Assembly: GCF_964204645.1 (NCBI RefSeq)
Contig: NC_134032.1
Span: 5,692,275-5,756,274 of the forward strand
Direction of reading: 5' to 3'
Source: Tubulanus polymorphus
Taxonomy: Eukaryota > Animalia > Nemertea
DNA: 64,000 bases
This document shows, piece by piece, positions 6,340 through 64,000 of this stretch (positions within the stretch are counted from its first letter, which is position 1; each line of letters starts with the position of its first letter). The position numbers and the translations under genes were made by a program. Under the pieces are notes generated by a model. That model was not told the DNA's origin. It saw only the letters and a program-made list of their open reading frames with translations, and ran no database searches.

Positions 6340-6600
6340 AAATTTCAACTGTGGTTTTGGAATGGGATGCTGTACTGTGGAATCAGATCCTGCATTGTGG
6401 AACTGGGTCCAGAACTAGAACTGTGTCAGGAACTGAAAAACTTAGTCCAGAACTGTAGAACTAGGCTCAGTACTGTGGAACTGGTTCCAGGATGGTACTG
6501 TGGAACACGATATGGGTGCCTAACTGTGGAGTTGGGTCCAGATCTGTGGAACTGTGTCCAGTAGGGTCCAGAATTGAGGTACTGGATTCTGAACTGTAGA
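6340..6600 (-). repeat. 21-bp minisatellite (reverse orientation)
   Basis: repeated actgtggaactgggtccaga; accounts for ORFs 6264 and 6367. Confidence 0.8.
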
Positions 6601-9389: not shown

Positions 9390-9640
9390 TCTGACACCAG
9401 GCCCACAGTTCGAGAACCAGTTCGGCAGTTCAGGACCCGCTTCCACAGTTCTGGATCCAGTTCTACAGTTCTTGAGCCTGTCCGCAGTTCTGGATCCAGT
9501 TACACGGTCCAGGGTCCAGTTCCACAGTTCTAGAGCCAGTTCCACAGTTCTAGAGGTAGTTTGACAGTTCTAGAGTCAGTTCCACAGTTCTAGAGCTAGT
9601 TTGACATTTCTAGAGCCAGTTCCACAGTTCTTGAGCCAGT
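9390..9640 (+). repeat. 21-bp minisatellite
   Basis: repeated ttccacagttctagagccagt; accounts for ORFs 9135 and 9352. Confidence 0.85.
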
Positions 9641-10151
9641 AGGTCGGACTGATCTGGGTTAAGGTTTGAGTCTGTCCTGGATCCAGAATTTACACAATTT
9701 GTCTTCCACAATACATGATTAAAGGACCTCAGGGTTTTTACTGGGTTGAAATTAAAGCATGGCAGTCATCAGAAAATGAGAGCCCTGAGAGTCTGGGGAC
9801 ACTACCTCGGAAAAATTTTGTTCTTGTAGGATCTCAGATCTGATTAAATGGTCAAAAGTTATTTAATCGCATTTTGCTTGTTAGTTATGTGGTAGATGTG
9901 AGGGATTAAAGCAATACCAATCAGAATTTTATACCGGTCAGAATCAAGATGACCGAATGGCAGCCATTGTTGTTCGCTGAGTTGAGCATTTCAAACCACA
10001 TCCCAAGTGGGCATGGTGTCCCTGGACCCCTAGTTAAAATCAAAATTGGTTTTGAGTACTGTAAGGATATACTTCAGGATGATATTAAACCAATTTCTCA
10101 AATATCAGCTTGCAAACGCTAATGTTTGTTTGATTTGTTATGTGTTTGCAG

Positions 10152-10327
10152 GAAGTGTTTGAATGAAAAAAGACGTCGCGATCAAGAGAATATTTACATC
10201 GAGGAGCTTGCTGAGTTGATCTCAGCGAGCATATCTGACATGAGTCAATTCTCCACGGTGAAACCAGACAAATGCGCTATACTGAAAGAGGCTGTCAATC
10301 AAATACGTCAAATCAAACAGCAAGAGG
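10152..10327 (+). CDS. NCOA: NCOA exon: bHLH domain
   Basis: ttgcag|G...G|gtaagt; [58 protein letters not shown] matches the p160 bHLH pattern ([16 protein letters not shown]...KPDKC.IL). Confidence 0.95.
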
Positions 10328-13300
10328 GTAAGTAATAAGTGTAGCCCCTACCCCTTTCAACCCTACCCCTCACAAATCGTGAAAAAAGTAAGGCTAAGTC
10401 TAATTGTTTTTGACCCAAGCTGAATTTGGCCCATGCCAGGTAAGGCCCTGGGCCAACCGTTCACACCAGTACCAAATGGTTCGATGACTGGTTGACATGG
10501 TCCAAATTTGGTCTGGCCAAAAACGTGAGTGCAAAATGTTGAGTTCATCAGTCTGATTCCTGCTTGAAATTCTGAGTTCTAAGCTTTCTAAACAATGCAA
10601 TCATAGATAAATTGTTATTGAAATCATTTTTATGGTGAGAATTTTGGATTTGGTGGATTTTACAATATTTTGCAATAGGCCTATTTCAACGTGCAGTTTT
10701 TGAGTTTTTGTCTTTTGCAGAAAGCGACGCTGCAGTTCAACAGAGTCACGTATCATCCAGTAAGCCGAACATATTGGCCAACGACGTGCTTGGACCACTT
10801 CTGCTCGAGGTAATGTAACGTAACACAGTCATCTAACAGTATTGGATTCCAATCATCAGGTAGATGTGACTAAGACTAACCCAGAAAATTTTGAAGCCTA
10901 AACCTGAACACTATCACATGGACAAAAAGTTCACTGATCTGACAATTCTATGAATAGGGGTGTGCAGTTTATTTGTCAGAGAGGCTGAAAAAAAAAGTGT
11001 CTGTCACTGTGACTAGATTCCTATATACCAAAGGGTAATTTTTGTGAATCTGGGAAGGTGCATGTGCTATTATCTAATTTAAGAAAATTAGTCAGCTGAA
11101 ACGTAATGACTATTTCAACATAATACATGTATATCAAATTTTTTCATTCATTTAGACCTCAATTATATTAATGAAAATCCCACATATATATGTGAGCATC
11201 AAACGTGCAAAATTTTCTGGGGGGAGGGCCCCCCGTACGCCGTTCTGTTCCAACCAAGTTAAAAACAAACCCTCCAGTATGTATTCCTCAAGTCATGGGC
11301 CTAGAGTACTAGTGTGTAAAAAGTAATGTTGGAGAGACTTATTAGATGGGTTGAATATTTGCGCTGCGAGTCATGTTGTATTTTGAATGAAGACAGGTGC
11401 AAAATATATGAAATGATGATGATACACAATACCTACACTTAATACACAGTCAGTGACATAGTGAACTCTACAGACCGAGTTCAATGCTATAAAATGCGTT
11501 TGTTCTGTTCGCAGTATTTATTGATCTGGTATTACAAGTATGAGCACAGCTGCTTGGAATAGCTCCACCAGCAGTGCATATATAGCACTATTTTCCTAAA
11601 ACATTCAAAATCTCTTCCTGTTTAATTCAAAGCAAAATATTTAAAGGATTCATTTAAAAAACGAAATGTATTTCATTGAAATACTTTTCGATTTAGAAAC
11701 AGAATTTATCATTGTGATATTATGATTTTTAGCAAAAATTTGCTCGGAATGCACCGGACAGCATATAATTTTTCTGGGGGAACTTTGCTCCCCTTTTTAG
11801 CCCACTTGGGACTTTAGTCCCTGCGGGCTATTGCGTTCACTTTTCGTCCGTTCGTCCGTCGTAGCGTCCGTCCGTCCGTAGATGGAATCCAGTTATTTTG
11901 GGAAGTTTTGAAGACGCTTCGAGGTAATGTCTTTATATTTGGGTTACACGTGTATCTACCCTAGACACATCTTCAGCCCAAAAACTGGCCCTGTCAGAAT
12001 CAAGATGGCTGACTGGCAGCCATTGTTGTTCGCCAAAATCAGCACTTTTTATACATTTTTGAACTTTTTGAGGGAAATTATTTTGAAGACGCTTTGATCA
12101 ATTACCTTGATCTTTCGGATATATATGAATCCCCCCAGGGCCCATCAACGAAACTAAAAATTGGGTCGGTCGGACTCAAGATGACCGTCCTATGACCTTT
12201 TTAGTGCCCAAAAATGTTAATTTTTGCCCGAATTCTGAGTCCTGTAGCTTCCTACTGGTTTACCATTTCTCATTGCAATTTGTGATGGGTATTCTTTGAA
12301 AAGGGATGTTTTATACCTCAGACAGGTATTTTTCATCAGCCAATTGGCGGCCATCTTGGTGTCACCAGTACTCATTCGTAAGTGGGAAAAAGTTTTTCCA
12401 CATTATATTGATACCTAAGCGTATTTTGCTACCACAATCAATAAGAAAGTTGTAGCTCATAACGTGTTCTATGATTGTGGTGAGTTTCAAGGTAATTGGA
12501 TTTCGTATATGGCCACCAGGGGGCGTTGAATAATACAATATCTTAGCATTTCTTTATTATATTCGTACCTATGCATATTTTGTAACCACAATCAATTGGA
12601 AAGTTGTAGCTCATGACATCATTTATGATTGTTGTGAGTTTTAAGGACATTAGTTTTTCTATATGGTCACCAGGGGGCGTTGAATAGTAGAATAACTTAG
12701 TATTTCCTTATTAGATTGGTACCTAGGCATATTTTGTTACCATGATCAATTGCAAAGTTGTAGTTCATGACATGTTCTATGATTGTGGTGAGTTTCGAGG
12801 TCATTGGGTTTTGAATATGGTCACCAGGGGGCGTTGAATAGTAGAATGACTTAGTATTTCCATATTAAATTGGTAACGAGGCATATTTTGTTATCACAAT
12901 CAATTACAAAATCGTAGCTGCTGACATGTTCTATGATTTTGGTGAGTTTCAAGGTCGTTGGTTTTTGTAAATGGTCACCAGGGGGCGTTGAATATTGAAA
13001 TTGTTAGATTGTTGAGCATTAGAAACCATTTCTCAAGTGGGCATGGTGTCCCTGGACCCCTAGTTTTCAAAATCCGCCCCTATTCTATGGAATATCATTT
13101 TGTCAGCGGTTTAAATTTAGATGGACTAAATCAATGCTGTTTTGTTAAGATACGTTTTTGAAGCACTGGTCAAGCTTGAAGCAACACTGACAAATTTCCC
13201 TTGTCTATTGTAAAATTAAGAATGTTCTGGGTCAGTCTTTTTGCTCGGTCTAAATTGGTCTGTTCTAAATAGAATGGCCCAGTTCCGACACCTGGTCCCA

Positions 13301-16300
13301 TTTAAATTGGAATGGACTTAATTCAGAAAGTATAAGTTTTTTGATTATTCGGGAATTGAGAAATTTGAAAATTAGCCGCTATGGCAGGATTCAATATTTA
13401 CACTCATATGGGTAACCAAATCCTCGTCTTTTTTTGAATTGTCTGTTTTTTATTTGGCCAGCTGATTTTTCAGCACTTTATTTAGACAGATGGACAGACA
13501 GGATAGATTGACAGGCAGGTAGACAGACAGAGACTGTTGAGTTTTGCCAACAAGCAGGTTGTCACATAGTCTATATCAGTTTCATGGATTGTGGGATATG
13601 AAAAAATTCCTAAAAGAATTTGAATTTTGTCTTCATTATAAAAAAAGATAATAATAAACGCGCAATGAAAAAACCAGACATTTGAAAATATTGAAAAATT
13701 TCTTAGATCTCTGCAAACTTTTGGTCTTCAACCTAAATGATTCATGCCTGGAATGAGGACTCTAGGTTCGACTTCTCATATTTGATTAAAGTCTATCCAT
13801 AATTTCTCAAATTCTTTGAATGGTGATCAGTAAAAACCACCTTAAATATGAATCGTAAGATCATCCGGGTTTATCAAGAGGAGCGATTTGCCTAATTTCT
13901 GATGAGGGAGGCTAAAAATCTAGATGAAAGTTCATTGAAAATGGACTACATTTTGACTGGGTTGTCGCACTGTTACGCACGCCATCTAGCGGGATAGCTG
14001 GTGGCACGAAGTCCTCATTTGAATTATGCTTTCATGAAATACATTTTCAAGAGTGTGGAATCCACAATTTTAGAAACTGAAATATTTAAAAGGATTGAAA
14101 GATTTCTCAATCGCTTGGTATGCTAGATTTTTGGCAACGAGGTCGGTAGCAATTCATTGTCAGTCGCTAAATGTGCGAGCTTTGAATCCAATAACAAAAC
14201 ATAGAATAGAATTCTTAGATAGAATTCTTGTGCGATTCACAATATGGCCCCCTCGACGTAAAGTTGCGCCTGCAATTCGGCCACAAAAATCGTTTAGTAC
14301 ATGGTTGCGGGTGACCGTATGGCGATTGGCGGCAGTTTAAACAAAAGTTGCAGATGATTAAAAATCATAAAACGAGTTTCATATAAAGAGCTTTAGGGTT
14401 GAATTAAAAGATCATTTTCAATTAGTTAACATTTGAAGCTGATCTGAAATCATGGCTGTGGAGCTGGGTCTTGTGATATAAGTGTCAGACGATTGCTTTT
14501 CTGTATTTTTCAGAATCTAAAAATGAAAGCAGCAGTAGATATTTTAAATTGATTTGTAATGTTTCTCGTGTTTCCTGTTTTTGCAGGCCCTAGATGGCTT
14601 CTTGTTTGTAGTGAATAATCAGGGCAAGGTTGAGTTCGTGTCAGACAATATCGGGCAGTACCTCGGATATACACCGGTAAGTCATAAAAACCCCCCACCC
14701 ACCCATAATCAGCCTTTACCTAGGTTGCGAAAAAACAATATCGTTTTAGAGAATTTTACAATTCAACCTGTTGCTTTTTTGCTTGTTGGACAAACCAGGA
14801 AGTGGTTCTTATATCTACTTCATGTTTCCACTTCTATACTGTTGGCCAATATCAAATCTGGTTAAATAAGAAGTTCATCCCACGAAAAATATCCCTACAC
14901 AACGTTGTAATTAATTATTAATTTTTAATTTACTATATATATGTATGTATGTATGTATGTACGTACGTACGTACGTACGTACGTACGTACGTACATATAT
15001 AAGTCTCTTATATATGTATAATTCTCTTGAATGAAACAAACTAAATTCTTTAGCTTTCAGACAAATTAAGTAATTGTCGTTGGTATAGTGAATCCCCGGT
15101 CTCCCCCACATAGATAAATTTGTCACATTTATTACAAAAAATTGCATATACTACATTTTGTGACTTACAGTTGATAAAGTTTCGGACACAATACGAGGAA
15201 CCTTCATAATTGATGAATCTATCTGAATTACACATATATGCACATGTCGCACACTTTTTTCCACACGGTTCACATCTACTTTGTTTTTTAAAAAACATAT
15301 AGTTGTGTTCTTGTTATATATATATAACAGAATATATAGGCCTATATAACAGAATATATATATAACAACAATACCATATTGATTATGTTGTATGCTGCAG
15401 CCGCTGCCTGGTGCTGTTGCTGCTGCTGCTACTTGCTGATGCTAGATTCCGCCTGTGGTGTCACTCACGTTGATTATTCGGCAAAATTTTTTGAAGTCGT
15501 TTGATTTCGTATTTCAAACGATGCAAATTGATACATGATGAGCCTCACAGATCTATATAGTTTCACAGCGCCAACGCCCAAATAGCAGTCTTAAGAACCA
15601 TTGAGTTTTATAATCAGGGTAGTGAATATTTCATTTAAAATTGGACCCAGTTCCACAGTTGCCAGTTGAAATTGACACTGATTAGCGTTAGATTTAATTT
15701 AGTCAATCGAGAATTAAAAGTTACACCCCAAGCATTTTTAACCTATTCCCCAAATTTGACTCCTGTCTGATCCAGGCTGTTTGACAACGGCCAAATCGTC
15801 TCCATGTGATCATGGTTATGGTCAAGGGTTTATGGCGTAGCGACTGTCCCAAATGTCCTTAATTCTGGCCACCACAGTACATTCACATAATACACCATTT
15901 TAGATATTCATGGCTGTATTGATATAGATTTATAATTACAAAAGCACTCTCCCTATCCCCCTCTCCCCTTCTGGGACAAATGCATGCAATGCTAATTATT
16001 TCAGCACTTAAGTTTGACTACTAAATACCTACATAGTGTACTTAGTATGAATCTTTCTATTGTGAACTCTTAAACATAATGAGATGAAATGTGAATATTC
16101 TACCAGAGTTTGTCATGCTGACTCCCAAGTTCAAAACGGTTAGCCTAAATATGAATTTTGTCCTTATTGAAAGTAGGCCTATCCAATAACAATCACACCA
16201 CATTTGAGAGTAACTTTTTTAAGAAACCTGACCCAGGGTGCTAAACTCAGTACTCTAGTTATATAATTTTCTGGCATGTATATTTATAATTGAAATGGAA

Positions 16301-25300: not shown

Positions 25301-28300
25301 TTGCGCAAGGTTCGCAAAAAATTTCTTTTCCCAAATCGAGTGTATGAACTTGATATGCTAATTAGCCATGTGCTCGAATTGCAAATTCAATCAAATTGTA
25401 TTCTGCCAAAAAAAATGTTAAATCCAATTCGCTTTCCGAGAGTTAATGGTATGCTGCATGGAACAAAGTTGTTTTGAGATGGGTCTTGAAGCTATTGAGT
25501 CGAGAGATAACCATCTAGATAGTTCATGAGAGTTCCAAAGTTTTGAAGACGCTTCAAGGTAATGTCTTGATATTTGGTTTATACGTGTATCTACCCTAGA
25601 CACATCTTCAGGCCAAAAACTAGCCCTGTCAGATTCAAGATGGCCGACTGGCAGCCATTGTTGTTCGCCAAAATCAGCACTTTTTACACATTTTAGAAGT
25701 TTTCGAGGGAAATTTTGAAGACACTTTTATCAATAACCTTGATCATTCGTATGTATTTGTATCCCCCAAGGGCCCATCGGCATGAGAAAAATTGGGTCGA
25801 TCGGACTCAAGATGGCCGTCCTGTGACCTTTTTTGTTCCCAAAAATGTTAATTTTGGCCTGAATTCTGAGTCCTGTAGCTTTCTAATGGTGTGCCATTTT
25901 TCATTGCAATTTGTAATGGGTATTCTTTGGAAAAGGATCTTTTATATCCGAGAGGGTATTTTTGACCAGGCAATTATGACGCAATTGGCGGCCATCTTGG
26001 GGTCATCAGTACTCATTCATAGGTGGAAAAAAAGTTTTGCCACATCATTTTGATACTTAAGCATATTTTGCTACCATAATTAATTGGAAAGTTGTAGCTC
26101 ATGACATGTTCTATGATTGAGGTGAGTTTCAAGCTCATTGGTTTTTGTTTATGGCCACCAGGGGGCGTTGAACAATACAATAACTTAGTATTTCTATATT
26201 ACATTCGTACCTATGCATATTTTGCTACCACAATCAATTGGAAAGTTGTAGCTCATGACATGGTCTATGATTAAGGTGAGTTTCAAGCTCATTGGTTTTT
26301 GTATATGGCCACCAGGGGCGTTGAACAATACAATAACTTAGTATTTCTATATTACATTCGCTCCTGCTGTCTGTGTTAAAACACGATTGTACTATGTAAA
26401 TGACATTGAGCAGGGAGTGTATATTGATAAATATAACCCACAGATTACATCATTTATAAAAAGCAAATCTGACAGGCTGGCCATTGTGCCCCTTGGGGCT
26501 CTTGTTACATTATTACTATACAAATGGCATGGTTTCCAGAGTAAAGGCTCTTTGACTGTGCAACTGAGCATATATTCATACAAATCATTCATTATATCCA
26601 TTCTTCATCCCCTATGAAGCTGAATTTTGAAAGAGGGCCTCGTTGAAATCTACATGAGCTATTTCGCGAAAATATTATCGCAAAAGTGTTCACGTGAACC
26701 CGCGGTATCATCTAACGTTTTACTTCCGGGTTTGATTTTAAGATCTGAAATTGTATTTCAATATAGATTTCTGTGAAATCTTAGTTGATTTGTTTTTGGA
26801 AGGAATATTTTTATTTGCACTGCAGAAAATATCATTGACAATTGCGCATAGTCCGGGAAAAATAGCTTTACTCAAATCGGATGGATTACCTTGGTATGCT
26901 AATTAGCCATGCGCTCAAACTGCAAATTCAATCAAATTTTATTCTGCAAAAAAATATCAAATCAAATTCAATTATACTTTATTGAACAAGGTAAAACAGC
27001 AAATCCAAATCAATTTTTTTTTATTGAGCAAATTTTAGGAAATTCAATTCTATTCCGCATTCAAAGCAATAAGACCAAGGCAAACAATTTATCTGAGGTA
27101 TTTGTTCCTGCCAGCTCCAGTCGCTGTCTGTGCTACTTGTGAAAACACGATATTAGCCTGGGATTAGCTAAGTCTATGAGCTGGGAGTGGATTTGGACAA
27201 TTTTAACCCACAGAATGCATCATTTGCCATTTTATGAAAAGCTGACGGGCTAACCATAGTGCCCTCTGGGGCTCTTGTTAGAATTTCTTTCTTGTTACTT
27301 ATTCCAGGGAAGTAAACCGCATATTTTTAGCTTAGAACATCCAACTATTTAGATTCATTGGTTGTGAATTTAGTATTTTAGAATGTATTCGATATTATGC
27401 GGTATTTGATCTTCCATACTTCAGACTGAATGAGTCTCAGCACCTGTGTCTAATTGTAATAATAATAAATGTTTTCCAAGAAATTGGCAATGTTCCAATC
27501 ATTCATTATATCCATTCTTCATCCCCTATGAAGCTGAATTTTGAAAGAGGGCCTCGTTGAAATCTATATGAGCTATTTCGCGAAAATATTATCGCAAAAA
27601 TGTCTGTTTTAAAAAGCCAATCAAAAAGCAAAGACTCTTCTATGATTGGCTTAGCTGTAGAGATCAGCAGGTGTTCACATGAACCCGCGGTATCATCTAA
27701 CGTTTTACCTCCGGGTTTGATTTTAAGATCTGAAATTGTATTTCAATATAGATTTCTGTGAAATCTTAGTTGATTTGTTTTTGGAAGGAATATTTTTATT
27801 TGCACTACAGAAAATATCATTGACAATTGTGCATAGTCCGGGAAAAATAGCTTTTCTCAAATCGAATGGATTACCTTGGTATGCTAATTAGCCATGCGCT
27901 CAAACTGCAAATTCAATCAAATTTTATTCTGCAAAAAATATCAAATCAAATTCAATTATACTTTATTGAACAAGGTAAAACAGCATCATTTGCCATTTTA
28001 TGAAAAGCTGACGGGCTAACCATAGTGCCCCTTGGGGCTCTTGTTAGAATTTCTTTCTTGTTACTTATTCCAGGGAAGTAAACCGCATATTTTTAGCTTA
28101 GAACATCCAACTATTTAGATTCATTGGTTGTGAATTTAGTATTTTAGAATGTATTTGATATTATGCGGTATTTGATCTTCCATACTTACTTCAGACTGAA
28201 TGAGTCTCAGCACCTGTGTCTAATAGTAATAATAATAAATGTTTTCCGAAGAAATTGGCAATGTTCCAATCAGCTGTCAGCGAAGCTGGAAGTGCCACAC

Positions 28301-31300: not shown

Positions 31301-34300
31301 ATATTTCATCTAAATCGGGATTGAAAGTCTTGCAAGGGGAAAAATGTGATTTTGATAACTTAAGGTCAAAGGTCAGCTGTTGAGTAAGATGCATGCACAT
31401 TCAGGGATGAAAATCCTCCGCCTATACACATTTAATAGCGCTTCGCGGGAAATCTATATTTAGAATCTGCAATCACGCGCTTCAAAGCATATAGCCTACG
31501 TGCTCAATAAAAGTAGTCATTGTTTTAATTCAGGCATTGTGCACTTGTCTTGAGTGGTATATAGGAAGATTATAGATTGGGGCCCCTCTTGGGACTCAAC
31601 TTTTTATTAATAAGTGCATTTAAATATGAACGAGTTCTAGTGATTTGTATATTGTCGGAGCCATCCATTTCATTTACTCATGACATAAACAATGAACGAT
31701 CCATTTCATTATTGTCTTATTTTGTCATTGGAAAATAGGCCTCAGCTGCACCAAATACTCCTCGAAATTTCAAAACTTACCAAACCCCGACCCCCGCCTC
31801 CCCCTTCTGTAAAAATCACCCTCACATGAACCGAAAACTAAGCATTTGCAAATATCGGCTGCATTTAATTGAGAGCACCATTGAACATCGTATCACAGTG
31901 AAAATGTTGCTATAGAAAACTCAATTGTTATTATTATCAATATTGTTCTAGTTATTAAACAGAACCCATTGAGTTAGATAGTCTTGTTACTGCTATTAAT
32001 AATAATGTTGATTATATTTAGTTATTTGTTGTATTTTAGCTGATAGCAGTGAGGAAGGCGAATCTAATGGTGGTTCGGCAGCAGGAGGAACAGGAACAGG
32101 AGGTGTGTCGGCTACGACTCCTCAGCTACATTCGTCGCAGTACGAATTGATGCAGATATCCGCCGTTCTACAACCGTATCCAGTAGACAGAGACTGCGAG
32201 TCACACGATGATACGTTCATAGGTAATTTCTCCTACGGCATCATCACTATACACAAGCTGCATCCATAGATCCCCCATGATATCCTTTTGTTCAACCTCA
32301 ATCTCCCGATGACATCATCAAATAAATCATAATACATGCTTTTCTATTAAGACGGATGCCTACATATATCCCCTATGACATCATCACTCCCTTTTTTAGG
32401 ATCAACTATGTTGATCTTTATAGAATGGTCCTGAGAGTAACTTTGTATTAGCTCTAGGCGGCACAAATTATGTATTATGTATTGTGTATTGTAGAGAATC
32501 AGTCGTGTTTAGTATGTATCGCTCGTCGTCTGCCGATCACAGAAAAATCAAACATGCTCGGAATCGATCAGTTCACTACAAAACAGGATCTCACTGGAAA
32601 AATAGTGGCTTGTGATACCAGGTAACCCTCACAGTAAACTCCCCTTACAGGATCCCCTTACCCTCGAATGTGAAACTGTCGGAAACACTTTGAGTACTGT
32701 TACTGCAGATACTGTGTAGAACCCTTACAGTACTCCCCTTAACTGCCGTTAGCCTAGGATAACCCTAACTGTCAGTACCCTGACTGTACCTTTATTACTG
32801 ATGCCCTAGCAGTACCCTTTCTGCTATGATCACCCTTAATGAGAGTCCTTACTGCTGATACCACTCTCACAGTACACTAATGGCCAGTACCCCTGTTGCT
32901 AGTACCCTTACTGCTATTACCCTTAACCCTTTCAGTGCGTCTACACCGCAGTGCGGCGTATGAATCAGTGATGGCTTTTGCTTGTACACTGCTCTGCGGT
33001 GTATTGATGTAATTAGTAATTAGTTTTTATCTCTATTGAAAGATGGCAGCACCAGTCAAACATAGTGAAATATTAGTAACTAACGATACACTGCACCGTG
33101 GTGTAGACGCACTATAGTAGTATTCCCGTTATTCAACACACTAGGGTGGAATTTTTCAAAATTTTCATTTCAAAATAATCTCCAGCGCTATAGGGTATTG
33201 ATTAGTCAGCACTAAAAGGGTTAACTTGCTGTAGGCGACTAGTCGACATCCTGACCTATCTCGTATTTAAAGTTTGTTTTTATGTCACAAGCGCCTTGCA
33301 GCGCATTGAGTCGATGTTCTTAACGCATAGCAACTGCCGATACTCGAGAATCCAAACCCGGAAGTAATTTCTCATTTTGATATTTTGAAGAATTTTGAAA
33401 TGTGGTAAATTTGACATTTTGATGAAGATTCAAATACTTAGACTGTAATAGAAGCATAATAAAGGTTTTAACGATAGATAGTAATCAGTAATCTACAGTA
33501 TCTTTATTTATGAATATCGACGATGTAACACAAAACTGTGAGTATTCTGACTTTCTATGGGGTCTTTTTGCGCTGGACCCCCAAAATTGACCCCACCTGT
33601 GGACCCCCTCTTCAAGTTTAATCTTTCAGCACTATATGGTGGCTATGATTATAAACTACTGCTTTGTAAAGTTTCGAAGCCCTATACACAATAGTTATGA
33701 GTTATGAGGATTTAATGAGATAATTTCATTGGGGTTAATTTAAGTACTCTCACTGCTACTACCACTCTGAGAGGACCCTTACTGCTGATACGCTGACAGA
33801 GCCCTTACTACTGGTACGCTGAACCCTTCCCAGTAAACTGAGCACTTGTCTAATCTGTTAATTTGCTTATGTGTTTTTATAGCGGGGTCTCCAATCATTA
33901 CAAGTATCCAAATTTCATCGATCAGAATATTCTAGAATTCTGTCACGTCAATGACAACCAATTACTCACTAAACATCATCAGGAAGGTATGTTCTACGTT
34001 TAAAAACTCCCCCTCTACTTTTAATCCCTCATGTGCTCATGTATGTATTAAATGTTTTGTAGTATTAAAGAACGGGTCGAATACTAGCGGAATTTATCGG
34101 TTCAAACTGCAGGGAAATCGTTTTGTTTTCGTACAAACGAAAAGTAAATTGTTCAATAATCAAATGACGAGTGAACCGGAGTTCATCATGTCGACTCATT
34201 CTATCATCAGGTACGTTACAATTCCAATGGAAAGTATAGAATCCCACGCTAAGAATGAGAATTCGAAATGTTTCTTCGGGCTGATGATTATTCAACGTTT

Positions 34301-37300
34301 TGATTACATCCCAATGACCATCTTCAGGAATACTGAATTTATATTGTCTATGTTATAAAAATTTCACCTGAAAAGAAAGTCCGAAATGTTTCCTTGAACT
34401 AGTAGTTTATTTGACATTTTGACCATATCCTAATAGTTATCTCCAGACGAACTGGGGTTATGAAATATAATCCAGAAAAAATAGACTTATTGAGTAATGA
34501 GATGATCATTGATGAATCACTGACCCTGTTGTAAAGCTAATGAATTGAAAATGAAAAATTGATTCTAGAATATTTCATTGAGTTAATAATTATTCAGTGT
34601 TTTGATTCTATCTTATAACTCATCTTAAACTAATTTATATTTCAACTTAATTTGAGGGGAAATCGTGTCAAAATTATGGTTGTAGGTATGGAAACATAGG
34701 AAACATATTTTAAACTTCAAATTATGGAGTCATTTTTGTCTGCAAGCCCAATCAAAGAGGACTTTTTGACAATCGTTTGATAGATTGTTTATGGTTAAAA
34801 ATAAATCTTTTAGTTCAGCTGTTGATCTGGCCTGGACCTATATCCGGTATGCACTATTAAAACTGAATAAGCGCGGCCCCCGGATGTCCTCTCAAGCAAT
34901 GTTGAAATAGACAATAGCGTGTGTTTTTATGATTTTTCGATTTTAATGAATATTGATTTTCAAATAAAACGTTATTTTCAGGGAATGCGATAACGATTTA
35001 GAATTGAAAGGTTCAGCGTCGACAAGTTTAATGAAATCGATCATCTACCGGTCGCAACATCGGCAGCAGCCGCGACAAACCCCGTCAACGTCGGCGTGTC
35101 CGCCCGGCAATGGATTACTGCCTAATACTATAGGTGGCGCCAGTATCAGTGCGTCTGCTACTTTGAAACTGGGTAAAGACGATTTGAATATCAACGATGT
35201 TTTGGATATGTTGCCGAAGTCGAGTTCCAGTGGTTGTTGGGACACGTTTTTATCTGGTGAGATGTTCGGCTTGACAAAGGCTACCTCTAGCGGCGGTTCA
35301 TCTGCGATTACAACGAATGCAATGCCATCGGCAGCTGCGCTTTCACAGATGACCTGGTCGAATCAGTTGCTGAAGGGTCAACAGTCAATCGGTCGTAACG
35401 CATCATCAACTGTCAGTCAACATCGACCACTCGCGTTAAATATACAAGGTCGGGGTTCAATCAGTCCCGGGTTTCAAAACCAGCGCAGCCCCGGGTACGT
35501 GTCCGCCGGGCAGCACAGCCCGGCGTATTCACCAAGTCCAAGCGTGGCGGCGCGTAGTCCAGGGGGTTGCGCTTCAACCGGTCCGCAACGCAGTCCAGCA
35601 GCATTCAATCAACCACAGTGGAGTCCGGGATTTGCGACAAACCAACGTAGTCCGGCCTCTGCAATGGGTCAAGGTCAAATGAGGAATATGGTATATCAGC
35701 AGCAGACGTCAAACCCGACTTCGACGACTCAAATAATTCCTCAAATTCCCCGTGAGTAAAAAACACGTTGTTTTCAGAGTCTTTTTGTAACCGCTTTTGA
35801 AGATAAAGTGTAGCCTAAAATAGCTTTTGTTTTTATGATCGATGATGTTACATGATTACATAATAATCTTAAGAAATTTTAGCTGCAATGAGTGATGGAT
35901 TACTGAAATATAAATGATTGAAAGTGTAAATTTGAAGGAGTTTTCATGTCGGGTAGTTCATTTGACACCCATGTGATGATGGTATAATAGGGGCTACATG
36001 CTGAATTCAAGCCAGCGCGAACTTCTAGCTTCTTATTGATATTCATGGTACTCATAGTTTCAGTTATCCCCGTCTATCTTCTATTTCCTGCTTTTTGCAC
36101 ATAGTACATATATCAGTATGGAGTAAAAGTCTCTGAGAGGCATGGGAAACTCTCCTGACTTATTATATTTAAATGATGACAGTTATGAAAATGATGATAA
36201 AACCAATACTTAACCCTTTCACTGAGAGCGCGACTGTTTATACCGTAATTTGCAGAAAAATCTATATTTTTCAAATTTTTCTATACTGATAATTTATGTT
36301 TTTATCGAAGATCATGGTATTTTATCATGAAAATCAGTGCAATTTTCGTCAAAAAGCCTTCACATAGCCCATGGGGCGGGATTGAGTGGGGGAGGGGCTG
36401 GAGTCTCGCATGCGTGTATTCACTGCTTGTGTGTACGTTAACGCTAATGGTCGATAGGTGAATGACGTTTCACAAACGTCATAGGAACAACACGTATCAC
36501 TCAAATGATATTTCCAAACCGTCATGCGTAGCGAAAGGGTTAATCATGAATTCAATGAGTGCATGAAGAAGGAACAAACCAATAAAACATGCACTGATGT
36601 GGTAATGTGTATACAGTGCACATTGTATTCACTGTGTAGCCCGTATGACATCACACGCATAGCAAATATCAGTAGGCGCTCAAAAATTCGGGAACCTGTT
36701 TTTTATTTTTCAAACCCATATATTTATTCAAGTTCAGTGTTTTTCGAAGAAATCACATTTTCTCATGGTATATGGTTTAGTTATCTATTGAATGAGATCA
36801 TAAGCATTTTGACGAGTAGGCTGCACTTAATCTTTAAGGGCAAACTTCGGTTTTCCTCTATTACTCTTGATGCTTGGCCAGAACTAATAATCGAACACAC
36901 TATAATAATTCAGTCTTCCATATTTAACAGTGTCGGCCATCTTGGAACTAGGTCTGAACTACAGTGACTGTGCTTAATCCGAGATATGCTGCTTTCGGGC
37001 TAAATTACAAACTAATTGACATTCACAAATATTTGACTAACTATGAAAACGGAAATTCGCAAAAAAAACCATGAACAGCCTATCAAGCGGTCTTTTCCTT
37101 GTCAAAAGTGTTTTATCTACAATTGTATTCCTAATTTTTGGAGAAAAATGTCCTTTTTGCCTATTTTTCACTGATTCCTAAATAAATGTCCATGTGCGAT
37201 AAAATGTTTTTGAAATCCATGGTATGATATCGTTGGTATGATTTCTGTACTATCATATAAGAAGTTGATGCCGATACCTTTGGTAGTGCAACATGTTTTC

Positions 37301-40300: not shown

Positions 40301-43300
40301 ATTTCTTGTTAGATCTCGCACTCCACCAATGAAAACTTAATGATATTGTTGTGACATAAGTAGCGTTACGCCACTTTCTAGTTCCACGCTGGACTTGGTT
40401 CCACAGCTGTGTTAATGATAAGTTTCTTAACTCAGGTCTATAGTTGTGTGGGTTTAATTTGACTCTGGATCCAGTTTCACAGTTGTATGTGCTTAATTTA
40501 ACACCGGGCTGAGTTCACAATTCTTGTATAGGTTTAATTTGATGCTGGACAACATACTTGTGTGAGCTTAATTTTCCATGAAATTAATTTCACAGTATCA
40601 AGTGTTAATTGAGGTTTCCAGGGAATCTCATTAATGTGGCTTTTAAAATGAAACTGTTTATTGAGGAATTAACTGGTTAATGGATTATGCATCTGGTTCT
40701 CGGTGGTTCATATTGCAACTGTAAATTTCGCTATTATGCCAATAATTGTTGACTTGTAGGAAATATAAAAGTTAATCATTCAGAAAAAATGGATTTGTAT
40801 AATTTGCGTTGATCTGGAGTAAAATGTGGATGAGTAAAATGTGTTAGAAAATTTATGACTGATTTTAGTGCGGCATACAGCCAGCTATTTTCTCAAATTT
40901 TGCGTGGGAAAAGCTAGGAAGCACCATTCGTTAAAACCAGTTCTTGCATTTCTTAGGATTGTAGTCCCAGTGGGCTATTGCGTTCACTTTTCGTCGGTCG
41001 TCCGTTCATTCATTCGTCCGCACTATTTACACACTTTTCAAATTTTCAAGGGAAATTTTCAAGATGCTTTGAGCAATAACCTTGATCTTTTGTATATACT
41101 TATAACCCCAAAGGGTTCATCAGCATGAGAAAAATTTGGGCGATTGGATTCAAAATGGCCATCCCGTGTCGATTTTGGCCCAAATTCTGAGCCAAATTCT
41201 GTAGCTTCCTACTGGTTTGCCATTTTTCATTTAAATTTGTGATGGGTATTCTATGGAAAGGGATTTTTAATACATTAGAAGGTATTTCTGATCAGCCAAT
41301 TATCACGCAATTAGCGGCCATATTAGTGTCATCAGTACTCATTCGTAGGTGGACAATATCAAGAGGTTTTAACTTATAGTCTTGATATCTGATTGTTATA
41401 AGCCCTGTCATTAGATACATCTCACATCACTCGGAATTGGAATCACTTAACTCTTTGTTCTTGCCACCATCTAAGCAAATTTTGGTTACCACAACCAATT
41501 GCAACTTTGTAGCTCATAACATGTTATATAATTGTGGTGAGTTTTCAAGGTCATTAGTTTTTGCACATGGCCACCAGGGGGCATTAAATAATACAATAAC
41601 TTAATATTTTTCTTATTATATTGGTGCCTATGTATATTTTGTTACCAAAATCAATTGTAAAGTTGTAGCTCATGACATGTTCTATGAATATGGTGAGTTT
41701 CAAGTTTATTGAATATTCTATATGGTCACCAGGGGTCATTCAATAGTAGAATAACTTAGTATTTTCTTATTGTATAAATACCTAGGCTTGTTTTGTTATC
41801 ACAATCAATTACAAAATTGTAGCTCATGACATGCTCTATGATTTTGATGAGTTTCAAGGTCATTGACCTTTTTATACGGTCACCAGGGGGCGTTGAATAT
41901 TGATGTTGTTAGATTGTAAGCATTTGAAACCCCTTCCCAAGTGGGCATGGTGTCCCTGGACCCCTTGTTTGAAATATATAGAAAGATTCATCAAAGTTAT
42001 TTCTGATATAATGGATTTGTTTCGATTTTCTTTAAGTCTGGAGTAAAGTTCTTCTATGAAAAGTCCATTTTCCGTTAGTGAAAATTGAAATTGAAAAAAT
42101 TGTGATAAACTTACCGAGAATTTCAAAATGATATTTCCTAGTTTAGAAATATTTGGAAATTTGATAGATTTTCCTTCCATTCGGAAAAATAGCTCTTGCT
42201 TGCCAGAGGGCAACGTTTTGCGATCTATCTTGAAAATTAACCAGTCACGGATTAACCTTCAAAAGTTTTGAGCGTATACGTCATTATATTATTTTCAGCT
42301 TGTGTTTTGTATATAAGACTATGTAATTACACCCATCACCCTTGCACTATTATTTCGATGCTGCTCTTCATTCAAATCAAAAGGAAGCAGCTCCGTGGCA
42401 AGGTGGAATGTTTTTACTAGTGAAAATTTTGAATTTTGTTCAATAAACCGTTTTGTTCAGTAAACCTCACAGATGCTAGCCGTCATTTTGTTAGGGTACT
42501 TTTTGCCCTGTATTATTGGATCTTTTATTCTCTCTTTTGAAACTATTTGTGATGCATGTTTTATCATATTTTGTTAGTCTATAGTTGAAATTTGACAGTT
42601 TTAGCAACATTTAAACTATGAATCTCTAGTTTTCAGTTGTGTAAAATTCATTTCTCAAATTTGCAACAATGCGAAATGAGAGCAATGTGAAAATCTGTGG
42701 CCAGCTTTTGCAATATGCCTAAAAATTCAGGCTACTCAAATTTGAAGTTTGTGAAATAATTTTCCAAAAAATTCAAATATTTCAGGTACTGTGCCCTCCC
42801 AAGTGATGGTATCAGTTAATTTCCATTTGAGAAAATTGAAAAATTACCCATAGATATTTTGGAAAAATTTTTGGAAATTTTGAATCATGTTACTTACTAT
42901 CTTAATATCAGAAACAATGATATACATTGTTTGTATAGAGTCTAAAAAAGAAAATCAATAGATATTTCAGGTAATAATCAAACCTCGTTTTAGGGGTGCA
43001 AGACTTCAAATTCAAGGGATTCATTTGGATCATAGAACAGTTAAAACATGTTTTTGCGTGATATCCGTTTCATTACTTAGATATAAGACTTAAGCTGGCT
43101 TTTGTTGACAATCGAGGTAACGCCTACCAACTCCTACCGATGCAACTGAGGTACGAGATCTGATCAGTTGCTCCCCTGTTTATGTCATTTATGCTTACTT
43201 GCAACTGCTGGTCATGTGATAAGCTTTTTGAGAATAGATTCAAGTTATTTTGATTTAATGGGCAATATATTTCCAGTTGATAAACTATAATATCTTTATC

Positions 43301-46300
43301 TTTTTGAATCTTTTCACGCCTATGGGGTTTATAAAAGAAATTAGAAAACTTATTTTGGATATTCAAGCCTTATTGCCGTATTACAAGAATCGTGAAATTG
43401 AAAAATTGCCCATGAAATACTTAAGGGGTTTTGAATTCATCATCTAACTTTGGGAACGTTTCTTAAATGATTTTTCAGAGCAGCAGCAGCCAATGATGGG
43501 TCTATCGGCCGGTATGGCGATGCGGGTTGGGTCGAACGTGCAGAACCCGTTACAGGCGTTGCAAACGATGGAAGCACAGGCTGGTGGTCGTTTGTCGCAG
43601 GCGACACGCGAGCAAATCCGTCAGATTTACCAGAAGGGAATGCCAATGCCTCAATCGATCAACAACCGCATGAAACTACGTCAGCTGTTGTCGCGTGAAA
43701 ACAAAGAGCTTGAAAAAACCGCGGATGCCTCACAATCGCCTGTGTGCTTGCCATCACCGGGGCCGACCAAATCGCCCCAACAATTGCCAACGACGACAAC
43801 GATGACGACACCCGATGACGCGGACGACATTAGTCACGTATCGACGCGCTCCGAGGGAAACGAGATTTTGAAGCAGTTGTTAAGTCAGGACGATGACTCG
43901 GAAGAGCGGTCGAAGTCGCGCCGTGCGAGCGTAGACGAGTCAGCGACCACCAGTCGACGCTCGTCCGATTCAACCAATGATAAAAACGAAGCTGAGCCGA
44001 AGAAAAACGAGAATCTGCTGTTAAAGGTCGGTTTTCAATTTGTTTCCAAATTCTGATGTCCCATATTTGAAATTTTTGAATTGTCACATTTTAAATACTT
44101 CATGCGTTCGCTGCTGGCTACGCAAGTATACTCGTACTTCCGGTTCTCTCATCCTGAGCTACTACGAATATATTTGTAGCTTCTTCCTATTCATGGTAAG
44201 TGGTCCCGTGTGCGGGAGTGCAAACTTGCATTCCGGCACATGGGAATGGCACAGTTCCTGATTGGCTGGCGATGTGAACAAACTCTGCTTTTCTCAATGC
44301 TCGGGGGTCAATTTCAAGTAAAGAGCTCCAGTGTCAACCTTAGAGTATATTCATGGTGGCATTTGGGGGCAGTACTATTGAATTCCCACATTAGAAAATT
44401 TGAATACGTCAATGAAAATTGCCATTGAATTGAAAATTTTGCGTTTAATTTTATACATAGCCATTGGGTATTCATGATATTGATTGCAGTATTTGAAATT
44501 TTCAAATCACCAAATTTGAAATTCATAAATTCCCACTTTTTAACTTTTTGAATTCAGGCAAATACTGCATGTAAGGGTTTTTAGAATATTTGAAAAACCA
44601 CCGAAAATTGCCATTGAATGATAAATTTTGCCACATTTAAAATTATGTAAAATTCGTATGAATTTCCTCATTTCAAACTTTTCAATTGCCACATTTTGTG
44701 CATATATCGATGCATTTATAATTTATAGCAATTGTTGAATGATGATAGTAAACCGGAGCAGACCGTTGCCGCAACAATGACCACAGCGAAAGAGAGCAAG
44801 AAGAAAAAATGCAAAAATGAATTGTTACAAAAACTTCTGTTAGATGATGAGGATGATCAAAGAGCAAATAGTGTTGTACGTATCTCATCGTGAAATCATA
44901 ATTCACAGGAAATCAGAAACAACTAGATAATTTCAAAATTATATTTGCTGGTTTGGATTTAGTTGGGTTTCTAAATTCAGGGGCAAGTTTTTTCAGCAAT
45001 CTTTCTTAAAAATTGTCTAACTAATCAATTAGTCACCACAAAAAAGGATGATGGTATGTGCTCATTTTTACAATGGTCTCAATTCAATTCGGGAAATTTT
45101 GGGTAATAGGGGAATTTCGGATCGATGGGGGAAAATATTGAACATGGGCCGCTCTGGACTCGAGTCATAATGTTCATGGAGACGTTTAAGGGTGGCTCCA
45201 GGTTGACTCAAAGAGGAATGCTAGGTTCACAATCACGACTTTTTGAAGAGAAATCGGGAAGTTGTCTCAACTTCTCGATTTCTCAACTTCTGACCTGGTT
45301 AGAAAAATAAACAAAAGTTGTGTCAAAATGTGTTCACACACACACAACATAATACACAACACTCCAGCTGGGCGTAGATGCAACAATGCATTTACCCAGA
45401 GAAGGATGAACAAGAAATCATAATTAACGCAGAAAACAAAAACATAATTGTGAGATAAAACGATTTTGGTTATCCAGCATCCAAAGATATCATGCCCGGT
45501 GTTAGGGGATCCTGGAACCGCCTGACTCCAGAAATTTTAAAAGAGAATTCATGAGTCTCATATATTCACTTTCTGAGAGACATGAGATTGATGAAATTTT
45601 ATAAAAGGGTTATTCTTTTATTGTAGAAATATTGCTTTCTCTTACCAGAAAGGAAGACTATTAAAATGTGCGCGAATATACTGCATGTTGATTGGTTAGA
45701 TTTCTCTCGACTCCTCAACTGAGTTGAGAGAAATAGAACATGTTCTATTTCTCTCAACTAGTCGAGACTAGAGTTGTGTCGAGGAAAATCGGGCAATTTT
45801 TTTATTCACACACATGACTCACTTCAAAATAGTTGTTCTCGACTGTGAGTTGCGCATTTCCCCGATGGAAAATCGTGTGTGTGAACCTAGCATTAGGGTT
45901 AGAGAATTTGCATTCATATGACAGGGAGCAATATTAGAATCAAAATGATGGTGTTAATTTAGAAAAGGGTGGCTCCAAGTACACTTGGATTTGTTGGTGT
46001 CGAATATCTGCCATGACACATTTTTCGATGTTTTTTACTTTTTCTTGCAGGAAAGCACAACAGCAATGTCAGACGAATCGGGTTCGAAAATGAATCACTC
46101 GAAAATCATTGATTCCTCGATACCGACACCTCATTCTTCGACTAAGAATCGTACAGTGTCGGTGACCAGCGTTGATAGCCTCGGTCTGAATAACTGGTCT
46201 CAGCAGGTGCCAATGTCGTCTGGTAATATACAACAGCAGCAGCAGCAGACAGGTTTAATGGGCGAACTCGATAAACTGTTGAATAATAGTAACAATGCTA

Positions 46301-49300
46301 GTCAGTTAACAAATGATAAAGTGTTGCAATTACTTGGCAACAGTAGTCCCGAAAGTTTCCTAGCAACGTTGTATGAACGCGAGAATAACCAGAACGCTAC
46401 TGCGATGGGAATGTCGTCTGTTGGCGGGGGCACCACCGGCGGTTTATACGGTGCGCCGGCCGCATTAGTGTCAACGAGTAGTAACGTGAATTTGCTAAAT
46501 TCGGGCGGCGGACTTGTGAATATCGGATCGATGTCCAACCAAATGCCGTCGGGATTTATTTCCGGAATACAGAGCGGGGCGAGTAAAACGCTCAAACGTA
46601 AAGCGTCCACGCAGAGTGTCGATAGCACAGGTGGTGCCACCGGTTCTGACATGGACGCACACCAGCAACAACAGCATCAGAGTCAACTGGTGCAGAATAA
46701 CCAACTGTTGACACAGCTACTTTCGAAAAAAGTTGCGCGCGAAAACCAAGCGTCGCAACAATCGATAACGGTTCAACCGACTGGGATACCGCAGGATAAA
46801 CTAACAATGAAACTGGAGCGTACACCGAGTGAAACGATGCTTGAAAATCTGATTGCTGAAAGTAAGAGTATGTTAAACGAATCAGTTGGACATGGACTGT
46901 GGGACAGTTCGGCACCGCCGCAAAGTCCGTACATGGTTAAGGATGATAAAACGGCGAAGGTTCGAGGTAAATCGTCATCAGTGCGCGGCGTAGCGGTTAG
47001 TTCTTCGCCAGCAACCTCGACCAGTTCAGCAGCGATCACCTACGAGAACTTACAGCAGCTGCTAGCATCGGCACCCACCAATTCTAGTCAGACGGACGAC
47101 GACAGCGGTGGCGCGGGCGGCTCGTCGTCCAGTAACAACGACCCTTTACTTGCGCAGATCATACAAACGGCTACTGAGCTGCAAAACGATTTGCACCAAC
47201 GCTCGACGTTGAATAATGCAGCGGATCTTGAACGCGGCGCGATGTCGTTTATACAGCAGCAGCAGCAGCAGACAGCGGTCGCTGCATCGGTGGCCACATC
47301 GGTGGCGCAGCAGGTGCAGCAGCAGATGGTTTCGATGTCCAAGCAGCAGCTGCTACGTCCTATGCCACCTGCGACGGTGGCGACATCGAAAGCGAACTCG
47401 ATGACGGACGACGCAACATTACTATCACAGTTGGACCAGGTTTTGAACTCATCAAATATCTCGCTTTCGGAGATCGATAATTTGCTCGGGATTGCGCAGA
47501 GCAACGCGCAGTATAACACCCAAGACATGCCTGAACAGATGGCTATAGATGTCATACAACAACAATTGATGCAGGACGACCCGTCGTTGGGTGGCAACGC
47601 GTCTTTGAAAACAACAATTGACCAATCAGCCATGGCTGCGAAAAATAAACTAAATCCGAATACGAATATCAGTAAAATGAATGTATTGAATAGTATGACT
47701 TTTAATCTCCAAGGAAGTGGTAATAACAATGGTAACAATGCAGCCATATTGAATAGTACGAGTTTAGATTCCTTGCTGGCGATGGATAGTTCAGGTGGGC
47801 CTCAGTCGTTAGAGAGTATGCTGACAGGCGGTAGCACCGGTTTTTCCCAGCAGCAGCAGCAGCAGCAGCAAACAAACGTGCAGATGATCAAACAACCAAA
47901 TAATCCGAGTTTTAATTTAGCAGTTCGATTCCCGAATCAGAATCAACAAGGTATATGTCGGATTCCCGATCATCTTTAAATGTCTGGTATATCGCTCAAA
48001 TATCAAAACCCAAATGCTCCCTTCTTGCCTCCAGTCATTACCTTTCAGGGCTGACCAATTGATACCCTAAAAAGTTGGAGATATTTTCAAAATTGCATCC
48101 CAGTGCATTGCATAATCAGGGATGAGAATTTCCCGCTATTTGGCGGTTTCCCGCTTTTTTGTGATAAGAAATTTAAAAAAACGAGCTTTCCAAATTGTCC
48201 AGATCCGTTGAGAAATTGATGGGGGAGGGGTTGAAAGGTTTGCTGTGTCTGGCATTATGTTTCGTTATGGCAGATATTTTACTTACTATACATCGTCACG
48301 CGTCATCCTTTAAGTATTATATCCTGACAATGTGTTGGATTCGATCAAACCTCACTTCAAACCCTACAGATCACTAAAAATGTCAAAAAATTACCAAAAA
48401 TCACAAATTTACCAATGATGCTCGAAGCAGCTAATGGAAGTAAAAACTGGAGCCTGGTGTCATCGCTCTGTTGTTGAGTTCATGACTCTAAGGTGAATTT
48501 ATAGCAGGCTAAACTGATAAATATGAAATAATATGAAATAAAATTGATTATTAGAAGAACTACAATCCTAGATCCATAATGAAAATATGAAAGTACCAGG
48601 ACTCGAACCGACAATCAAAATTTGGCCGTCAAGTGCTGCCACCATGTGATACCTGGCAACCAGTCTTAACATCGTCCTGTGTTGCAAAATGTTTTTTGAT
48701 AATATTAGGACATTTATAGTGATTTTTAGCCTTTGCAGTGAGGTTTTATCGTATCCAATGTAGCGGTAGGATATCATATTTCAAGGATTAATCCTGACGA
48801 TACATAGTTAGTAAAAAAAACGCTCATTAAAAACTTGAAGCGAGAGATTTTTATTGCAAATGAGCTAAAACATGGCGGATTTAGGTTCCTATTTCCAGTT
48901 CTGACAAGCACCATCAAACGAGTAATTCCAGAGATAATAATAGAGATTATTACAAATTACTAATTACATAGATACACCAGGATGCTGTGTATTAGCTAAG
49001 TACTTCACCGATTCGTACACTGCACTGCAGTGTAGATGCATTGAGAGGTTATACCGACCCTTCCCTTCTCAGCCAACCCCTTATCACCATTTTCATCGCA
49101 TTGTTCTCATCGATTATTAGGTCTGAATAATCTGCAACAGCAGGCAGCAGTCGCCCAACAACAAGCAGCCGCAGCAGCTGCAGTGGTACAGCAGCAGCAG
49201 CAGAATCGCCTGGGTAATTTTAGTGGAATGTCTCAGGCAAACGTGCGACATTCGCTGTTGTTACAGCATCGACAAAGACAAATGAGGGACATTCAGAAGC

Positions 49301-63084: not shown

Positions 63085-64000
63085 GTGAGTGGTTAGATCC
63101 ACGTGCCTGCTGTCTATATCTGTCTGTCTATCACTGCTACTGTCAGTTACAGCTTATTTCATATACCATGCTGCCCTTTCCTAATCAATCCTTTACACAT
63201 TTCATATTGTCATCAATCAATCATCCTGTTGAAATCAAACTATCAAATACTTGTTCCCCAGTAACCACCCAACATGAGCCTTCAGATCTCTTCCTAAAAC
63301 TTGGTCTTTATACATATAGGCTAATGTTTTACATAGATAAGGAAAAAATTAACCGGTATTGAAAAATTGTCATGATACCAATTTGACAGTTCTAGGCACA
63401 GTTTGGACAGTCTTAGACGTAATTGGGACAGTACTAAACACAGTTTGGACTTTCCAAGACTCAATTGGGACGGTACTTAACAAAGGTTGTACAGTTCTAA
63501 ACACTATTTGGACAGTTCTAAACAAATTTGTCCCATTTTATTGTTGCCAACCATATTTTCCATATTATTCATTCGCCTTAAACTTTCTCCCTCTCCTTTT
63601 ATTATTGTCCCTCAACTCAGATAATCATCCTGTGCAAGCTGCCTACTCCCTGACGCAAGTTTATGGAGGCAGCCATTTTTTTCTGACAGTATCCATATAA
63701 ACTACCGCGGAAAAATTTATTATTTAGGGCAGTTGCACCGTCAAGACATAAGTCCAAAAGTGGTCTTAAATCTAAAGACTGGTCTTAAGTTTTTGGATTG
63801 GTTATAGAACCAAAATGAGCTTAGAGTTGTCCTAAGTTGTCAGATCAGTTATAGAGCAAAAATGAGCTTAGACTGTTCTTAAGTTGATGACTTGTGCAAC
63901 TGACTCCTGAATCACAGTTGTAGCAAGGGATTCGGGTTGCCTCGGAAATCATTATCGCTGCTTGTCACTGAACAGTGTTAGTTTTTAATGAACGAATGCT

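Follow-up and report, generated by a model that had tools for sequence, protein, structure and literature searches.

The 154-bp tandem array of near-consensus CTCF words studied here, from the ribbon worm Tubulanus polymorphus, is the central array of a mobile, non-coding element of Helentron type. The reading that we consider probable is that the word is kept by the lineage of the transposing element itself, and that most of the copies that element has left in the genome are neutral cargo rather than insulators of the host.

Within the window (the whole stretch of DNA analysed, 64,000 nucleotides), TGG(C/T)CACCAGGGGGCGTTG was present in exact form at 12510, 12664, 12818 and 12972, all on the + strand, at exactly 154-bp spacing and spanning 12510–12990. 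The original prediction, made from the letters of this DNA, had claimed cores at this exact spacing on this strand, and the pattern search recovered them; its coordinates (12513 and so on) are right, as they denote the same sites counted from the fourth base. Searching the window for TGGYCACCAGGGGGCGTTG gave a fifth exact match at 26152 (+) and, with 1–2 mismatches, matches at 41877 and 41568 (+), compared with none in any of 100 shuffled controls. Three of the nine sites put forward earlier are degenerate: one G of the G-run is gone at 26306, while the sequence is GGGGGCATTA at 41568 and GGGGTCATTC at 41723. Tandem Repeats Finder delimited one array at 12391–12994 (period 154, 3.9 copies, 84% matches) and another at 41471–41899 (period 154, 2.8 copies). 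Likeness to a CTCF site was measured as the count of positions agreeing with the consensus TGGCCACCAGGGGGCGCTA, as printed in 10.1101/024620. By this measure the word in monomer 1 (12510–12528, TGGCCACCAGGGGGCGTTG) agrees at 17/19 positions, the figure claimed originally for the best unit, and the words in monomer 2 (12664–12682, beginning TGGTCACC), monomer 3 (12818–12836) and monomer 4 (12972–12990) agree at 16/19, all four being on the + strand and exact at all 12 core positions.

The array lies inside a well-delimited element. When the region was compared by BLAST with 30 genomic copies, found using one monomer as query, similarity began at 11794 and stopped at 13066, and the DNA beyond these two points was unrelated, which defines a full-length element of 1,273 bp (copy 1, 11794–13066, + strand) with 95.4% identity to the family consensus. 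Its 5′ end (11794–11832) comprises a T-run, the 5′ subterminal inverted repeat GCCCACTTGGGA and a complementary inner repeat, together forming a hairpin; DNA folding of 11794–11840 gave −8.5 kcal/mol (z = −3.2), and 0/200 shuffles folded as well. The left module contains a (CGTC)n-type microsatellite at 11849–11881, detected by Tandem Repeats Finder and present in the family consensus too, followed by approximately 500 bp of non-repeated sequence (11882–12390) with YY1-like AAGATGG / CCATCTT words at 12002 and 12351. Then come the central array (12391–12994), which holds 3.9 monomers of 154 bp and whose last motif block stands directly before the array end, and a right module of 72 bp (12995–13066) with the 3′ subterminal inverted repeat, short palindromes and the end CTAGTT(T), all of these parts being read on the + strand. 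In the consensus the 3′ subterminal repeat is CCCAAGTGGGC, complementary to the 5′ repeat, and the two subterminal inverted repeats were found at both ends in nearly all 30 copies. Written out, the termini are 5′ TTAGCCCACTTGGGAC... and 3′ ...CCCAAGTGGGC...CTAGTT. The consensus palindromes at the 3′ end are CCACTT-CCC-AAGTGG and GTCC-CT-GGAC; in copy 1 the 3′ palindrome is weakened by two substitutions (fold z = 0.7).

The last 26 bp of each 154-bp monomer form a block, ATATGG(C/T)CACCAGGGGGCGTTGAATA, which contains the CTCF-like word, so that each insertion deposits up to four co-oriented words. Across 80 copies the arrays ranged from 1 to 6 monomers (mode 4). DNA folding found no fold in the motif block, and an Rfam search of 11500–13300 returned no match. 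Among the 30 copies, elements began with a T-run and ended CTAGTT, the next base was mostly T, target duplication was not visible, and at one locus two elements lay head to tail. The left flank of copy 1, searched against the assembly, matched only itself at full length, with neither an empty site nor a second allele. Insertion into arrays near the motif was considered and discarded, as the break points in rearranged copies were inconsistent with one another.

Unrelated flanks in the 30 copies, the anatomy described above and the 154-bp array bear out the claim that the carrier is a mobile, Helentron-type element with internal tandem repeats. It is a non-autonomous member of that class (HINE), a label given on structure because no Rep locus was linked to the element's ends: the genome holds 58 Helitron_like_N matches, with a PIF1 helicase after one of these, and the element's termini were absent from 12/12 of the Rep loci examined from this set. 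The structural likeness to HINE / DINE-1 elements, for which we take oyster Cg_HINE (PMC7492417) and Drosophila DINE-1 (PMC4067079) as examples, extends to two modules with subterminal inverted repeats, the 5′ one being accompanied by a complementary inner repeat; to a short array whose monomers measure about 150–170 bp; to a 3′ palindrome; to elements joined head to tail; and apparently to insertion beside T without visible duplication of the target. Cg_HINE carries a GTCC-type microsatellite and inserts at T-rich sites without duplication (PMC7492417), and the worm element resembles it further in having a GTCC/CGTC-type microsatellite in its left module. The two are nonetheless unrelated in sequence, and the host here is a ribbon worm; kinship with Cg_HINE was rejected when neither the worm element's termini nor its motif could be found in the supplementary files searched for that paper (PMC7492417). 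The worm element differs from known HINEs in that every monomer holds a near-consensus CTCF word, and our literature search found no paper describing CTCF words in Helentron monomers.

The family is large, and it dominates the stock of such words in the genome (268 Mb in 77 contigs). Allowing up to 3 mismatches, a 27-base 3′ anchor gave 2,450 matches genome-wide against 0 in the control, so the family numbers about 2,400–2,450 recognisable copies. The element-type 22-mer ATGGYCACCAGGGGGCGTTGAA matched at 7,443 places, compared with 1 for its control. The proposal that the family spreads co-oriented clusters is supported: words phased at 154 bp occur in the thousands. The exact 12-mer core CACCAGGGGGCG gave 4,686 matches across the genome, against 4 for the reversed control. 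In only 475 of these 4,686 does the next base differ from the element's T, and on contig C1 the exact element 22-mer contains 71 of the first 100 exact cores; from these two counts the family supplies roughly 70–90% of exact cores. GCGT is the ending of the element's word; of the first 100 non-T cores listed, 71 instead end GCGC, as the canonical consensus does. Some of the non-T exact cores sit in other repeats, spaced 1,127 or 2,079 bp. Among the copies listed for contig C1, positions ran from 6.3 to 19.4 Mb and none fell within the first 6.3 Mb, a distribution typical of weakly deleterious repeats.

All three clusters of the window lie inside a single gene, as originally stated. Exons of this gene, on the + strand and searched singly against Pfam, identify it as a homologue of the NCOA/p160-type coactivators: a bHLH exon at 10123–10332 (bHLH_NCOA, E = 5.4e-22), a PAS-A region at 14560–14862 (weak Pfam match, NCOA-like by eye), a PAS_11 exon piece at 32458–32622 that precedes the PAS_11 exon at 33951–34358 (E = 1.6e-12), and a large exon at 45985–47979 matching Nuc_rec_co-act (E = 1.7e-5; 25 bits, just under Pfam's cut-off of 27 bits), all on the + strand. 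Since these exons flank the clusters on both sides, and gene and elements share a strand, all three clusters are intronic and in sense orientation. Copy 1 (95.4% identity to the consensus) retains 4/4 words intact. Copy 2 (25538–26358, +), truncated at both ends and 89.7% identical to the consensus, retains 1/2: the word at 26152–26170 is intact, and that at 26306–26323 lacks one G. Copy 3 (40952–41969, +) is older and rearranged, with 79–85% identity, and retains 1/3 cores (41877 intact; 41568 and 41723 decayed). An array-less remnant at 9934–10035 (+), in which part of the left module is joined to the 3′ end, lies about 90 bp upstream of the bHLH exon. The three copies are thus independent insertions of different ages, the older ones having fewer intact motifs, and because they differ in age their spacing of 14–15 kb is a by-product of separate events.

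A candidate reader for such words is encoded in the genome. Three degenerate DNA patterns, derived by back-translation of vertebrate CTCF peptides, had no match in the genome; a looser pattern for finger 3, R-H-x-R-Y-x-H-T-x-E-K/R-P, had a single hit, at the CTCF locus (L127, contig C3, 3429095–3432129), which comprises three open exon pieces. With exons again searched singly, the two pieces searched both had full-length human CTCF as their best match among solved structures (7w1m_H, E = 6e-70 and 7.8e-61), and the alignment ran collinearly from the N-terminal region across the fingers. It includes the cohesin-contact YDF motif (siYDFkee against human svYDFeee). The helices of fingers 3–5 are near-identical to the human ones (TSGELVRH; VELSKLKRH against VEVSKLKRH; PDTYKLKRH against RDTYKLKRH), and fingers 6–7 are more diverged. 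By homology, then, the species has a CTCF gene, as the earlier reading presumed, whose predicted core-reading fingers are very like those of human CTCF.

If the words served the host, those of inserted copies should be better kept than the remainder of the monomer, as had been proposed, and this expectation failed. Decay was measured in 80 copies from contig C1 picked by an exact 3′ anchor only, which makes the sample blind to the motif; their 256 monomers (median identity 95.5%) were assigned to four monomer types, with the majority consensus of 34 canonical copies as the yardstick. Counting all differences, the 19 motif positions fell below the rest, with ratios of 0.65–0.74 in the A/T, G/C and CpG classes. 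Counting rare variants (found in ≤3 copies, or in ≤1), which are those arising after insertion, the motif/rest ratio was 1.1–1.5 per base class, and none was significantly below 1. The 12-base core was intact in 58% of the 256 monomers, the median for all other 12-mers in the monomer being 59%. The CpG of the motif was lost by transition in 16% of monomers, as against 12–26% at four other CpGs (those without a high-frequency shared variant), and loss at motif and other CpGs alike was approximately 3 times the non-CpG rate, which suggests germline methylation and a word without protection. Private-variant ratios, core intactness and CpG loss being all like those of the rest of the monomer, inserted copies decay neutrally: the test for purifying selection on the word at inserted copies came out negative across the 80 copies, a sample that leans to young copies on one chromosome and that a small exapted minority would escape. 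Neutral decay refutes a general constraint by the host and is still compatible with a few exapted copies.

Between the element's own lineages the picture is the reverse, and the motif block is the most conserved part. Of the 154 positions, 108 are invariant across the four consensus monomer types, and the longest invariant run among them is the 19 bases CACCAGGGGGCGTTGAATA (permutation p = 0.06–0.08), so that conservation among the four types taken alone is suggestive. Across ten cluster consensuses, representing monomer types and subfamilies, 2/19 motif sites were variable compared with 52/117 other sites (Fisher p = 0.005), a contrast that rests on few independent lineages, and high-frequency shared variants tended to be depleted in the motif (p = 0.07). 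Such conservation is in keeping with selection or homogenisation at the level of the transposing lineage and not of the host, although gene conversion could also be its source.

Taken together, these data make it probable that the array is a transposon's central array in which each monomer would hold its near-consensus CTCF word, within the terminal 26-bp block, by virtue of selection or homogenisation on the transposing lineage. The word may aid the element; one way would be for CTCF, or some other factor recruited to it, to keep source copies accessible. Most inserted copies, the three in the window included, would on this account be neutral cargo; the words look like cargo of the transposon, rather than insulators of the host, because once inserted they decay like ordinary DNA. 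Young copies may be bound by CTCF all the same. The stronger proposal, that selection on the lineage has maintained a functional CTCF site in each monomer and that young copies are indeed CTCF-bound, is one we advance tentatively, and we would sooner expect it to fail than to hold.

It is unlikely, though less so than a role in the host, that the 26-bp block serves the element or its array in some way unrelated to CTCF, as the site of another protein or as a hotspot of expansion or homogenisation, its likeness to a CTCF site being coincidental. Several features would suit such a block: what is conserved exceeds the CTCF word, taking in ATATGG and AATA as well; the array end always falls directly after it; arrays hold anything from 1 to 6 monomers; and the block ends GCGT where most of the listed non-T exact cores end GCGC. 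Against this, a match at all twelve core positions would be improbable by chance, the reversed control having found just 4 sites genome-wide.

That the copies are mobile insulators or loop anchors exapted by the host, with CTCF-bound, co-oriented clusters shaping domains, here in the NCOA gene, we regard as very improbable: a word in agreement with the consensus at 16–17/19 positions, a CTCF with conserved core-reading fingers and YDF motif, and co-oriented clusters within one gene are all as this reading would have them, but mutations that arose after insertion give no sign of constraint, CpG loss in the motif is like that elsewhere in the monomer, most words of the two older copies in the window are already gone, the three copies differ in age and so do not form a designed unit by their spacing, and the copies listed for contig C1 lie between 6.3 and 19.4 Mb, with none in the first 6.3 Mb, a pattern typical of weakly deleterious repeats. 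The original suggestion of portable insulators or loop anchors is not supported, given the neutral decay and the loss of motifs with age in the window, and the GCGT ending of the element's word, as against GCGC in most listed non-T cores, weakens it further. It is also at odds with replacement experiments in mouse ES cells, described in a 2026 preprint, in which invertebrate CTCF orthologues put in place of the mouse protein reportedly formed no loop-extrusion domains (10.64898/2026.10.19.759930). According to the same source, the CTCFs of fly, sea urchin and sea squirt bind vertebrate-like motifs and depend on an extra 3′ terminal cytosine (10.64898/2026.10.19.759930). For spiralians, evidence of CTCF-based domains is limited to one squid study (review PMC10658181).

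A close parallel to transposon cargo of this kind lies in the CTCF sites borne by mammalian retrotransposons, for instance rodent SINE B2 (background in PMC7520972 and PMC8627837). There too, consensus CTCF words are spread by a repeat family of high copy number, which makes up the greater part of all such words in the genome. The worm's carrier differs in being a DNA rolling-circle element, with its words in phased tandem arrays of up to four; and unlike the mammalian sites, the worm's words are predicted ones, in an invertebrate host for which a loop-anchor role of CTCF is not established. Were the stronger proposal true, namely a lineage selected to keep working sites and young copies bound, a rolling-circle DNA element would be remodelling a spiralian CTCF landscape in waves, as an invertebrate DNA-transposon counterpart of the SINE-driven CTCF expansions of mammals, with a few copies open to exaptation.

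For the window itself, the outcome is an ordinary one: the three repeats are intronic, differ in age and give no sign of serving the host. For the genome as a whole, much turns on binding. If the words are not bound, they are a warning that scans for CTCF motifs in invertebrates can be dominated by a single repeat. If the worm's CTCF does bind them, one transposon family would constitute most of the strongest CTCF sites in a spiralian genome, and its approximately 2,400 dated insertions would amount to a natural experiment on CTCF sites outside the vertebrates, where the role of the protein as a loop anchor is disputed.

Most of the window was taken up by a single long gene of the NCOA/p160 (steroid-receptor-coactivator) type, lying on the + strand at 10123-62000. 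Its bHLH_NCOA exon (10123-10332) was followed by PAS exons at about 14.6, 18.3, 32.5 and 34 kb and by a 2-kb exon (45985-47979), downstream of which were glutamine-rich exons at about 49.0-49.5, 55.3-55.9, 56.5-56.8 and 57.5-58.0 kb, all likewise on the + strand. A remnant of the element that lacked the array (9934-10035), with a piece of the left module, the non-repeated 5′ part of the element, fused to the 3′ end, was located upstream of the bHLH exon, only some 90 bp from that exon's open frame. The window also held several arrays whose repeat unit, 20-21 bp long, had the form CCACAGTTCTAGAGCCAGTT / TGGAACTGGGTCCAGAAC, found on both strands (9403-9640, 6396-6490, 1162-1207 and 63379-63530).

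In the majority consensus of genomic copies, the left module contained three YY1-like words, at positions 197, 369 and 552 (CAAGATGGCCG twice on the + strand, CGGCCATCTTG once on the opposite strand). Copy 1 (11794-13066) retained two of the three, at 12002-12008 and 12351-12357.

The CTCF gene of this genome (locus L127, G000:C3:3429095-3432129, + strand, G000 being the assembly of the species) comprised at least three exon pieces, covering an N-terminal region with a YDF motif as well as the fingers; the recognition helices of fingers 3-5 were nearly identical to those of human CTCF.

On contig C1 (32 Mb) of the same assembly, copies with the exact 3′ anchor, a 27-base sequence from the element's 3′ end, all lay at 6.3-19.4 Mb among the first 100 matches listed, and none of these fell in the first 6.3 Mb; the family seems to be concentrated in the central part of C1. 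The first megabase does hold single exact cores (the 12-mer of the CTCF-like word), outside the element.

A variant in which monomers 2 and 3 were separated by an additional 184 bp (L002-L004, L013-L016) occurred on several contigs, each time with identical flanks, and also in tandem at a spacing of about 2.5 kb (G000:C5:15817062, 15819585, 15822108; C6:17752484, 17754983), which places it within a larger repeat. Exact cores ending in GCGC, as in the canonical consensus, rather than in the element's GCGT, recurred at constant intervals of 1,127 bp (G000:C1:14587516/14588643, 14597345/14598472, 19388930/19390057) and 2,079 bp (C1:19744014/19746093/19748172); CTCF-type words are therefore also present in other repeat families.
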